A stretch of 64,000 bases of DNA from Malacoraja senta. Its lineage: Eukaryota. Position 1 is the stretch's first letter. The number at the start of each line of letters is the position of its first letter. The stretch covers positions 35,836,001-35,900,000 of the forward strand of contig CM075977.1 of NCBI GenBank assembly GCA_038087875.1, given 5' to 3'. Of the stretch, positions 10,926-47,609 are shown in pieces. The notes under the pieces are model-generated. The model was not told where the DNA came from, made no database searches, and worked only from the letters and a program-made list of their open reading frames with translations. Both the position numbers and the translations under genes were made by a program.

Positions 10926-13900
10926 TGTTAATTGATTATTTTGACTGTTGTTGGGTAAATGAGGAAGATGAAGGAGATGTTTTGTGCCACACAAGTTCCC
11001 ACAAACACCAGTGAGATGCAATTCATGTGCTCTGGTAACTTTTATTTGAACTAGAACAAGTCCTCGGTTTAAAACCCCCAATATGTAGAAAATTAGAATC
11101 AAGGACAATTGACATGTCAAGCTTTGACAGAATACTGAAAGACAGAAATGGTATCTGTTGTTCAGAAATTCATTGGTAATCTTGAATGCATTACATAGTA
11201 ACTGTGTTGCGCTAGACTCGACTTTTAAAATTCAGTCCCATTGAATTAAGTGGAACTGAATTTGAAACTCTCAGCATGGATATCACTACTTTATAGCACG
11301 TTAAGCATTACCAACCAGAACCAAATGTCTAAAAATATAATAATCGGGTTTTAACAAGGTAATCACAAATGTAGATATATATAAATGAACAAATTTAATA
11401 TCATTCTATTGAACTGGTTTGTGCAATTGTTTTAACCTTTGCAGGTGTGGCCGGTCAAAGCTTTAAGTGTACATTCAAAGTGTGCATTAACTGTGAAGTG
11501 AGAAGCAACAATTATAATTTAAGCTCTCAGCTAATATTTGCTGCCACCAATGTCTGGGAAATTTGATTCTGCAAATTAAATAGCAACAACAGAAACTATG
11601 AAGCTAATCGCTGTTATTTCAAAGGAACACTGCACATCAACATAAAATATTTTAGACTGCAGTGTGATGTGGTATGCAGAATGGAATCATGTTGAAGGAG
11701 GAAATTCTATTGGTGAAGAGGGTGCTTCCTTCAAAAATATGTTATGTAGCTGAGAGTGTGAGGGAAGAACCTAGGTTGATAGACTAAAGTGAAATGAGAG
11801 ATCAACTCTGGGTCTCCCATTTTTTATCCTTATTTATTAACCCTTATGGGATGGGATGGACGTAGATGTCAAGTGATGGGTTCTTCATTGTATTAATGCT
11901 ATAATTACATGAACTGGTGGTATTACATCTCACGGTTTGTCAATGAAAAAATGTTGACATAACCTATTACAATTTGATATTTTTACCTCTGATTAACATT
12001 AACAGTGGGGGGAGCTTAAATTGTGCACATGGTTATCTGCAGAATATCTGGGGTATAATATGTACTCGGTTGTCTGTGATGCTTATGGGAGCATCAGTTA
12101 GTTGTTCCCTTAACTCCCATTTGGTCCCATTGACCTGAAATAACTGACAATCAGAGATGAACCATTTGCATCCCTCCTCCTACTGCTAATATCAATCATG
12201 AGTGTAAGTAAAGCAAAATAACAAATAAGTTACATTACCATTTTACATTGTGATACCTGAAGACTCAGTGCCAGCCATCTAATTAATTACAGGCAACCCC
12301 CAGGTAATGAATAGTTTTTTACCAATGTCCCTAAGTCATTTTTGTCCATAAATCGGAAAATACAAAAAAAATATTTGATACAGTTATTTGATTATCTCCA
12401 TCGGAGTGTAATGAATAGCATCAAAAGCAGATTGGATTAATAAGAAGGAACAGTTATTGAAAGTGGAGAGGGAGAGGAATCTAGTTTCTGCCATTTGTAA
12501 GATATTGGACTTTTAAATTTAATTTGTTATGGAACTTTGTTTTTAAACGTCTGCAAGTCCAATGTTCATAACCCAGCGATGACCTGTATAGGATTATAAA
12601 ATATGGGAAAAGCTTAGCAGGTCAGAAATCGTCTGTGGAAAGAGATACAGTTAATGTTTAAGTCGAAAGTCCTTCATCAAATTGAGTAAGTTTTGCTGCC
12701 CGATCTGCTGAGTTTCTGTTTGTATTTCAGATGTCAAGCATCTGAAGGTTTCATCATTCTCTCTAACTATGGGATCAGTATTGACAAGAGAGTCGCCAGT
12801 CACTTGACATCCATATCTACACTATCCAATATGGGTTCCTGAAGAAGGACAAGAATGGGAGTGCTTGCAGTGCAGGGAATCAAAAGGTGTGTTAGTTATG
12901 GAATCTTATTGTTATTCCTCCATTTATATGATACTGTTGATCTCCTTGTCAGCTATACCTATGCTATCAATACTTTCATGTCCAAAGAGATATAAGCTGT
13001 GAACATGTTCTTGCATAGTCGTTGCCCCCTTTATATTCACATAAATACAAATAAAAATAAATGCCACCAAGGACGTCCAGAAATTGTAAAGAAAAATGCT
13101 TCAATAAAATTATTTTCCATCCATCTTTAGTATGATGAAGTTATAACTATGAATCTCTTCAAGGAAGAACTAATTAAGGAATTCAAATCTTTTTCTAATT
13201 GTGATCATATTGTACATGATTCTGTGGAAGTTACAATGATATCTAATGATTTTGGACATAAGTAATGAGAAAATTTAATTCACAAAATAAATTGCTGTGA
13301 TTAACTGCAACTTTCATTCTGGCAAGAGAAATTCCACAATGTTAATTTGTTTGCAAATATTAACAGTGATAATAAAAAGAGACTTTACACTTATGCGAAT
13401 GTTGTGTTTAAACAGTGTAACAGTATGCTAACAAGAAATCAGGATCTGATGATGTTTCCCTCGGCTTCTCATGATTAATTTGCCCTTCTAATAAACATGA
13501 CAGCAGCACGTCATTAACAACCAACCTATGCATTGTAATTCTTGCCATTCCAATCTTTTTATCCCTGAACATTCAAAGAAAAGTATTAATCATAGTTGTC
13601 GTTCATTCTTCTTTCTCCAGACACTTTGGTTTCAACTGGGATAAAAACAGAGGGCAGATGGAAAGATGTCCTTAGTCACTTGTGACACAATAATATCTGC
13701 AGTTGTACACCATTTATGAAATTTGGCTCCAATGATTCCAATGCAGTGTCTACTCAATTAGTGCAAACTGCTAAATATGAATTTCTATTCCTTGGCACCT
13801 TATCATTATGAAATCGTAACTGAGATGGGCAGAGAAAATAAACAGGCCCTCAGCTGTCATTGGCCAACATTGAATCTCCCATTACAAATGACCTAAATTG

Positions 13901-15892: not shown

Positions 15893-18800
15893 CTTAAGAT
15901 TCCCTTTTGTTGTAAAAGCTCTGCCACAGATTGTGCAGCCAAAAGGCTTTTCACCAGTGTGAGTGCGCTCATGGATCTGAAGAGCACTTGCAGAAGAAAA
16001 GGTCTTCCCACAGGACGGACAGTTATGCTGCTTGGGAGTCCGACGAGGTGGTGGTGCCAGAATGGGTGTCATACCTGGACTCAGAGCTGTCTGTGGTGCA
16101 GATGGAGCCTGTATACCAACTGGAACCTGCGTGCCATCACCTAGGGAGATCGGCTTGCTGTGACCATTGACTTCCATTTTGACCACGGTTGGTGCAGTGC
16201 TGGTGACCAGGCTAGGAGTACTTTGGGTGGGACCTAGAGTGGAGTTGGGTTCAAATAACTGAGAAGGAAGTTCTTTCATCTTGTGAGTCAGTAAGTGCTG
16301 TTTTAAATTACCCATAGTGGAGCAACCACGATTGCAGATTGTGCAAAGGAATGGACGCTCTTTAGTATGGCTGCGGTAGTGAATTTCCAACGCACTTTTA
16401 CAAGCAAAAGGTTTCCCACAGATACTACAAACAGTACTTTTCAACTTACCACATTCTTGGTTGGGGAACAGCATACTAAAAGCCTCTTCTTTGATGATCG
16501 GCCGGCTCAGGTTGGTGGCTGTCAGATCAAGTGCACCTCCATTCTCCCGTTGAGTTGATGGACATTCCACTTTTTCTAGTTTCACCGGTGTTTCATGTGG
16601 CTCTTCGTGGTTGCCAAAGCCTGGTGACTTTGACCTTTGACTCCCAGCATTGCTGGGTACGGGCGATAATGCCTGAATTGAAGAAGAGCACTCAGACAGT
16701 GCAGGGCTACCAGCACTTTGACTTTCCAGATCACCCACAGCAGAGGAAGAGTCATTTGTTAAGCGATCGCTTTCCATGGATCCGTTTTCAACAGATTTCA
16801 CGTTGGATCGCTGCTGTGTGCCCAAAGCACAATCTATTATCTTCATCTGATTCTCCAGTGCGGCAATGTTGGAAATCACCGAAGGCGGTGAGTTTGGTGA
16901 TGAACCAGAGTAGCAGAACAACTGTTTTGAAGACTCCATCGTGGCAATGTTTAATTCTGCCTCCTCGTCCATTGAATTTTCATCCATCATTTCATCGTCA
17001 GGATAGTCGCTCATTAGTTCTGCATTCATTTCGTCACAAGATAAGTCTCTGTCCAGGCTATCTGAGAAATCTTCTGGCAATGGAGTGTTGGGAATCTGTC
17101 CCCCCATGTGCATGCGGATATGCTGCTGTAAGACTACAGCATTTGTGAATTTCTTCTGGCAAATGGGACAAGAATGCTGTACTCGAAGTGGTGGCTTTGC
17201 ACGGTGAACTCCGAAGTGTGTCTTTAAGTTCCCCTTGGTGGTAAAAGCTCGTCCACAGATCTTACACTTAAATGGCCTCTCGCCTGTGTGTGTGCGGTAA
17301 TGCATTTTCAGAGCACTCTGACAACTGAGTACACGGTGACAGATAACGCACTGGTTGGGGTCTGTCATCTTTTTGTCTATGTTCTCCACCAACTGTTGCA
17401 GTTTTGAGGTCTCAGATGTTTGCATAGAATCCAGCAGACCGCCAAAGGGAAACTTTGCCTTGAACTGATCAGATATGATGGGGAGCAGAGGACTGGGAAG
17501 GGTTGTGGGAACGCTGTTCACTTCACTTTCTCCACATGTAGAAAAGGTGGTGGAGCACGCAGCTGAGGAAATGGACTGCGCGGATGCACAGCCTTCTACC
17601 ACCTTGAAACCTGAAGCTGATGCATTTGAACCTTGAACCATGGAAACAATAGTACTGCCAGTAACTGATTGTGGAGACTCTGCGGTCATTGGAATGCTAG
17701 AATCATTCTTGTTCATGTTTGGTGACAAAGAAGCACATTCGCTGGATGGAGGTGATGGTCTTTGGGGTGACCTGCTTAAAGGAGTCACTGTTGGGGACTC
17801 ACTTGTAATACTTGATAGAGTTGGAGGCAACTGTAATCCAACTGATGTTGGTATGGTTGACAGCACAGGTTTGGTGTCCAGCCAGGTTGTCACTGGCTTT
17901 TCAGGTGGCAAGGACATCCCGTATGGAATACCACTGCTAGTGGGTACATTATCCAGGTATTCAGGTACTGGATATGGATTCATCTGGATGTGAGGGTATT
18001 TTTCTTTATGCCTCTGGAAGTGTACTTTGAGATTACCTTTGGTGGAAAACCGATTTCCACAAATATTACACTTGAATGGTCTCTCCCCAGTGTGAGAACG
18101 AAGGTGAATCTGTAATGCACTGTCACTCCCGAAGACCTTAGCACAAAACCTACACTTATGCTTGAAAAATGGATCTTCTGAACTTATTTTAGGGTCAAAC
18201 ACAGACACATTGGGTGGTTTCCCTTTGCGATGCTTCATAAGGGCAGCCAGTGGGTCCAGGGCATTGGTTGTGGCAGCAATGCTGACCAAGGGGTTTGGGA
18301 ATATCACACCACTTGAGGAATTCTGAGGTAGCAGTGGATTAGGCATGCTGGAAGATGGACTGAGGAGACTACCGTGTGCAAGAGATGACGTTGAATACTG
18401 CAACTGGGAGGAAGAGTTATCTGTGTTTGCACTGGAACTTGGAGTCAGGGAAGATGCAATTCCACTTGTGCATGGAGGCAAAGTGGACTCCAATCGCGGT
18501 GATCCACCACTGGGTAGAACAGGCGTACTAGCCCCCGAGGTGGGCTGAATGATTTTCTGGGAGCCATCGAAAGCTGAAGTGTGGACATTGGGCGCCTGCA
18601 CTGTGCCCGAGGCTGAAATGACGCCTGACAAGGGGTTAGAAGAATGGTCACTGAAGGAGGCGTGCTGGCTAGCAGCAGATACTGGTGTAACCTGGGAGGA
18701 TGCAGAAGGGTTTAGAGGGTGCATTGTCTGCGGGTTCATCATCGCTACCTGGTTCCGGATTTGTTCAATGAGTTGAAGCTGGTGCAGCTGCTGCTGCTGC

Positions 18801-47342: not shown

Positions 47343-47609
47343 NNNNNNNNNNNNNNNNNNNNNNNNNNNNNNNNNNNNNNNNNNNNNNNNNNNNNNNNNN
47401 NNNNNNNNNNNNNNNNNNNNNNNNNNNNNNNNNNNNNNNNNNNNNNNNNNNNNNNNNNNNNNNNNNNNNNNNNNNNNNNNNNNNNNNNNNNNNNNNNNNN
47501 NNNNNNNNNNNNNNNNNNNNNNNNNNNNNNNNNNNNNNNNNNNNNNNNNNNNNNNNNNNNNNNNNNNNNNNNNNNNNNNNNNNNNNNNNNNNNNNNNNNN
47601 NNNNNNNNN
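47343..47609. other. Assembly gap (267 N)
   Basis: Run of N. Confidence 1.

Follow-up and report, generated by a model that had tools for sequence, protein, structure and literature searches.

A probable in-frame exitron that removes zinc-finger cluster 3 from SALL3 of the skate Malacoraja senta

The window analysed here is a stretch of 64,000 nucleotides of the Malacoraja senta genome (GCA_038087875.1, contig CM075977.1, positions 35,836,001 to 35,900,000 of the forward strand), and the gene that it contains on the minus strand is, as judged from its sequence, the rajiform skate orthologue of SALL3 (spalt-like 3). Its exons were located with tblastn, using a SALL3 protein from a skate as query, after which the splice sites were read. 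The gene has the three-exon layout of SALL3: a short exon 1 (coding part 61051-60976, minus strand), which starts with MSRRKQPRPQHL and carries the N-terminal motif of SALL proteins (MSRRKQ); a large coding exon 2 of 3.48 kb (19374-15893, minus strand), which encodes the first three clusters and the beginning of the fourth; and exon 3, whose coding part (6088-5657, minus strand) ends with the stop codon, so that cluster 4 is split by the last intron. The top database matches of the 3.48-kb open frame are all annotated as "sal-like protein 3". Over the searched region, the exon 2 frame shows 97% identity to Rhinoraja longicauda, 95% to Carcharodon, 95-97% to elasmobranchs and 71-79% to tetrapods; the identity to SALL1 over the cluster-3 region is about 62%. 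The assembled product has an ungapped identity of 96-98% to three skate "sal-like protein 3" models, with equal lengths of 1329 and 1257 residues for the two forms discussed below. Pfam reports four zf-C2H2 matched stretches in exon 2, and the translation displays four C2H2 clusters, cluster 3 included. Two further features of the locus may be recorded here. Intron 1 contains a run of 267 N (47343-47609), an assembly gap or mask, and an open frame of 205 codons lies antisense to exon 2 (16531-17148, plus strand); the latter is most likely a by-product of the composition of the coding strand.

Within exon 2, an interval of 216 nucleotides, or 72 codons (16234-16449, minus strand), encodes the residues GKLKSTVC...EPNSTL and, within them, the two fingers of cluster 3, both complete C2H2 motifs (16429-16367 and 16345-16283, minus strand). 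At its upstream border, the minus strand reads CAAGAATGTG in the exon followed by GTAAGTTGAA in the interval (or, likewise, CAAGAATGTG followed by GTAAGTTGAAAA), with the last G of the exon at 16450 and the first base of the putative intron at 16449. At the downstream border, AACTCCACTCTAG is followed by GTCCCACCCA (likewise CCCAACTCCACTCTAG by GTCCCACCCA), the last G of the interval being at 16234. Each border falls after the first base of a GGT glycine codon, so that splicing would regenerate GGT and hence glycine. When retained, the interval contains no stop codon, and its removal is in frame. Assembly of exons 1-3 gives a protein of 1329 residues with the interval and one of 1257 residues without it, the latter having the junction ...FPNQEC/GPTQST... 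(the slash indicates the point of joining). Thus, the preliminary description of this DNA, which had reported a GT/AG pair bracketing both fingers of cluster 3, an interval of exactly 72 codons, a regenerated glycine and products of 1329 and 1257 residues, is borne out in each of these respects by the minus-strand sequence from 16449 to 16234 and by the assembled coding sequence. An interval that lies inside a coding exon, has canonical signals at both ends, is open throughout and has a length that is a multiple of three displays the sequence features expected of an exitron.

The two splice signals are of unequal strength. The 5' splice site, GTG/GTAAGT, is written into the codons TGT-GGT-AAG-TTG (16444-16452, minus strand); it fits the U1 consensus at exon position -1 and throughout the six positions on the intron side, and no second GTAAGT is present on the sense strand of exon 2. 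The 3' splice site region (16234-16272, minus strand) consists of an interrupted pyrimidine-rich tract, CTTCCTTCTCAG...CCCAACTCCACTCTAG, with the AG at 16235-16234. The tract before this acceptor, CTCTAG, is interrupted by purines and is much weaker than those of the constitutive SALL3 introns. A candidate branch-point motif, TTACTGAC (16294-16287, minus strand), places its A at 16288, 54 nucleotides upstream of the acceptor, and the sequence TTA CTG AC is invariant in the six lineages compared below. Since AG dinucleotides occur between this motif and the acceptor, a nearer branch point, such as CCCAAC (~16246-16251), is equally possible, and TTACTGAC is put forward here only as a putative one. 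The pyrimidine-rich element CTTCCTTCTCAG (16259-16272, minus strand), 27 nucleotides upstream of the acceptor, resembles a stronger 3' splice site, and its CCT TCT is nearly invariant across lineages. The CAG at 16261 was considered as a productive acceptor and rejected: when it is joined to the donor, the frame shifts into a stop. A search for a stable RNA fold joining both splice sites found none (z = 0.14), and Rfam gave no match on either strand.

The DNA of this region was compared in six lineages, namely the skate, the chimaera Callorhinchus (L001), the sturgeon Acipenser (L002), the vole Microtus (L003), the bird Mesitornis (L004) and the frog Pyxicephalus (L006), a sample that includes no shark, coelacanth, lungfish, squamate or teleost SALL3 and no chondrichthyan SALL1. 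The cluster-3 coding sequence is present and open in all five non-skate lineages. The donor GGT AAG T is invariant in the six; the residue after lysine is leucine, phenylalanine or cysteine, yet its codon always starts with T, which means that GTAAGT is preserved where the amino acid is not. At the acceptor, ACT CTA GGT is likewise invariant, and the leucine codon is always CTA. The length of the interval is 216 nucleotides in five species and 213 in the vole (Microtus), and is therefore always a multiple of three. The conservation of both signals in six vertebrate lineages indicates that the GT/AG pair is more than a chance occurrence. As a side observation, the protein match to exon 2 in the Callorhinchus milii SALL3 DNA splits in two at ~22812-22815 of L001, which suggests an assembly frameshift and fits the "LOW QUALITY PROTEIN" label of the RefSeq model.

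The constraint on silent sites was measured by counting only those columns in which all six species share one degenerate amino acid. Codons are invariant at 27 of 54 such columns (50%) in the exitron, compared to 61 of 456 (13%) in the rest of exon 2 (Fisher p = 3e-9). The other zinc-finger clusters display no comparable excess: 2 of 62 columns are invariant in cluster 1, 4 of 87 in cluster 2 and 13 of 47 in the exon 2 part of cluster 4, and the difference between the exitron and these three clusters pooled is significant as well (p = 6e-10). The 100-nucleotide flanks of the exitron are also affected, with 7/18 and 7/12 invariant codons. Silent-site freezing in the exitron and its flanks is about four times that in the rest of the exon. 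Sliding counts outline a zone of raised synonymous-site conservation (16050-16550, minus strand) that is centred on the exitron and extends about 100-180 nucleotides into both flanks. Nucleotide identity between the skate and the five other species tells the same, at 82-98% in the interval versus 67-85% in the rest of exon 2. The splice-site codons themselves are invariant in five cases out of five, for which the chance is about 1e-4 at a background of 13-17%. The preliminary description had asked for synonymous-site constraint at both splice sites across SALL3 orthologues, and all splice-site codons prove invariant in the six lineages.

A paralogue provides an informative contrast. The search for paralogues was flooded by poly-zinc-finger proteins, and SALL1, lamprey and invertebrate Sall proteins were therefore chosen by the number of matched stretches. 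SALL1 of the bat Saccopteryx leptura (L005, 12262-12636) has nearly the same residues at the two borders, RGKFK ... NLGP. At the donor position, its codons are GGT AAA TTT, giving GTAAAT, a degraded donor; at the acceptor position they are AAC CTC GGC, which leaves no AG. The lamprey sal-like protein has Glu-Arg-Met at the position of the Gly-Lys of the donor, and neither motif is present in teleost SALL1 proteins. Judging by this small sample, the splice signals are specific to SALL3.

The short form of the protein is already present in existing annotation. When the protein database was queried with 100 residues spanning the spliced junction, about 90 proteins were found to cross it without exactly the 72 residues, all at the homologous position (..E[CR]/GP..), with junctions of the form ..NQEC/GPTQ.. 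or ..RER/GPSQ... Among cartilaginous fishes, the carriers of such models are three skates, stingrays, an electric ray, five sharks and Callorhinchus; the others are sturgeons, gar, bichir, frogs, a caecilian, many squamates, turtles and many birds, and, among mammals, the opossum, the Tasmanian devil and the Asian elephant, together with a partial model from the chimpanzee. In Leucoraja, Amblyraja and Rhinoraja, the short isoforms have 1257 residues and differ from the long one by the absence of exactly residues 1001-1072. The closest counterparts of the predicted spliced product are "sal-like protein 3 isoform X2" of Amblyraja radiata and "sal-like protein 3b isoform X2" of Leucoraja erinacea, which have the same junction, the same 72 residues removed and the same length of 1257 residues, and are each 98.1% identical to it; isoform X5 of Rhinoraja longicauda, with the same junction and removal, is 96.2% identical. 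For these three skates, the species is the sole difference from the case in the window. The cluster-3-less SALL3 forms of other jawed vertebrates have a homologous junction, with GTAAGT and CTAG wherever the DNA was read, and differ in the flanking residues. Long-form models are present in most species. For many birds and lizards, isoform X1 or the sole model is the short form, and gar, sturgeon, bichir and Callorhinchus have the short form only, among the models listed; in Callorhinchus milii, the sole listed model lacks cluster 3 although the cluster-3 DNA is intact.

Therefore, the suggestion that one-exon annotation misses this domain switch has to be abandoned: RefSeq, Ensembl and other resources carry the short isoform in dozens of species, three skates included. 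The mammalian SALL3 isoform without cluster 3, which the preliminary description had mentioned, does exist as models in elephant, opossum, Tasmanian devil and chimpanzee. The wider proposal of a switch common to jawed vertebrates is supported by signals conserved at synonymous positions and by cluster-3-less models from chimaera to mammals. The exitron is thus known and annotated as an alternative intron, deeply conserved but little studied with regard to function, and the silent-site constraint and the contrast with SALL1 are modest additions to it. Homology-based pipelines may have carried many of these isoform models from one species to another and, since models transferred in this manner are not independent of each other, their count does not constitute independent evidence of expression.

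The signals, the open frame, the conservation of both and the matching annotated isoforms are matters of observation. Together they make it highly likely that SALL3 exon 2 holds a true alternative intron, whose retention would yield the protein of 1329 residues and whose splicing would yield that of 1257. Weighing against this reading are the poor pyrimidine tract of the acceptor and the better-looking, frame-breaking CAG 27 nucleotides upstream of it. According to this model, the 216 nucleotides, when retained, would be translated as cluster 3, giving a SALL3 with clusters 1-4. Alternatively, the spliceosome would take the donor GTAAGT (16449) together with the weak acceptor CTCTAG (16234), in which case the two fingers would be removed in frame, the glycine regenerated, and the resulting SALL3 left with clusters 1, 2 and 4 only, the cluster layout of SALL4. 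The combination of a strong donor and a weak acceptor would permit regulated, partial use. Both outcomes appear to be kept by selection: the preservation of the open frame and of the zinc ligands implies that retention matters, and the preservation of splice signals at silent positions implies that splicing matters. Splicing would be expected to occur in Malacoraja senta itself; it may be regulated via the conserved flanks, and the two proteins may differ in function. More tentatively, the exitron and some 100 nucleotides of each flank could form a conserved splicing-control module that sets a tissue-specific ratio of four-cluster to three-cluster, SALL4-like SALL3, a proposal that we regard as possible rather than probable.

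The annotated models could have arisen in quite another way, if the GT...AG pair were never, or only negligibly, spliced and the short entries all went back to one early model, copied by homology-based annotation to any gene with a GT and an AG in place. Several models indeed come from homology-driven sources (e.g. the bird "SALL3 protein, partial"), and a search of the protein database for short spliced contigs with a 160-residue junction peptide matched nothing but unspliced genomic-type fragments and a single annotation model from the chimpanzee, with no spliced transcript among the matches. Propagation between databases, however, does not account for the invariance of GGT, AAG, T.., ACT, CTA and GGT over about 450 million years, when 83-87% of comparable codons vary, nor for the replacement of the residue after lysine with the first base of its codon always remaining T, nor for the loss of the AG in a SALL1 paralogue with the same residues. 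In addition, the chick and murine Sall3 sequences used in one comparative study are without this finger pair, there numbered ZF4, and alternative splicing of this region is mentioned in the same study (PMC5892016), which argues against propagation. We consider this explanation very unlikely.

A little less improbable, although still unlikely, is the idea that the silent sites are held constant by some other overlapping function, such as an exonic enhancer, an RNA structure or an antisense transcript, of which the splice-like signals would be by-products. In its favour, the conserved zone passes the intron borders into both flanks, and one paper (PMC2180198) reportedly deals with strongly conserved non-coding DNA around SALL3 on 18q. 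Conserved flanks, however, are the usual signature of conserved alternative splicing events; the RNA fold statistic and the empty Rfam search given above argue against a structural function, and no such function predicts an invariant GT, an invariant AG and a frame-preserving length of 213 or 216 nucleotides. One may ask, conversely, whether the interval is a constitutive intron, cluster 3 never being translated and the long form being an annotation artefact of the open frame, as the short-only listed models of gar, sturgeon, bichir and Callorhinchus might suggest. This can hardly be reconciled with a frame of 71-72 codons that, in six lineages, has stayed open, kept every zinc ligand and evolved under purifying selection at the protein level, with the coding of the same cluster in SALL1, lamprey and invertebrate Sall proteins, or with long-form models in most species, and it is the most improbable of these explanations.

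The papers on the cloning of mouse Msal, Xenopus Xsal-1 and human SALL3 (Ott in 1996, Hollemann in 1996 and Kohlhase in 1999) are said to have reported alternative splicing of a finger pair. The SALL3 exitron is far more deeply conserved than is usually described for exitrons in general. With the exitrons of Marquez et al. (2015; PMC4484396) it shares the location of an intron in a coding exon, coding potential, canonical GT-AG borders and a length divisible by three, as well as a weak acceptor and the removal of a protein domain. It also resembles the SALL4A/SALL4B pair, in which the set of zinc-finger clusters is likewise altered by a splicing event inside the large exon 2; there, however, the gene and the splice sites are different, and SALL4B keeps only cluster 4, having lost clusters 1 and 2 rather than cluster 3 (PMC9838217). 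A 2021 review of the SALL family draws SALL3 in one form and gives reported isoforms for SALL1, SALL2 and SALL4 alone (PMC8699250), and our literature search found no paper describing the SALL3 switch or testing its function. The nearest solved structures in the SALL family cover different clusters, in SALL4 and SALL3.

In SALL3, a transcription factor of development, cluster 3 presents a paradox: missense variants are not depleted there in a study of human variation (PMC9838217), yet at silent sites its DNA is more conserved than any other part of the exon. An optional intron with its signals and regulators written into the codons would explain this. The SALL3 isoform pair should be seen not as a new discovery but as an under-studied domain switch whose conservation spans more than 400 million years. 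Cluster 3 is missing from SALL4 (PMC9838217, PMC9672407), and this absence might descend from the fixation of a spliced form such as the one proposed here. As for annotation, the SALL3 gene of Malacoraja senta should carry products of 1329 and 1257 residues, as its relatives do.

Other variation in SALL3 products involves events separate from the exitron. Several further isoforms (P0130, P0137, P0193 and others) lack the first 64-135 residues, including MSRRKQ, or have shortened C-termini. In the window, a segment of intron 2 (13411-13638, minus strand) matches the alternative C-terminal end of the Rhinoraja longicauda SALL3 isoform X4 with 86% identity over 76 residues, and is probably an alternative last exon, the use of which would truncate cluster 4 and the C-terminus.
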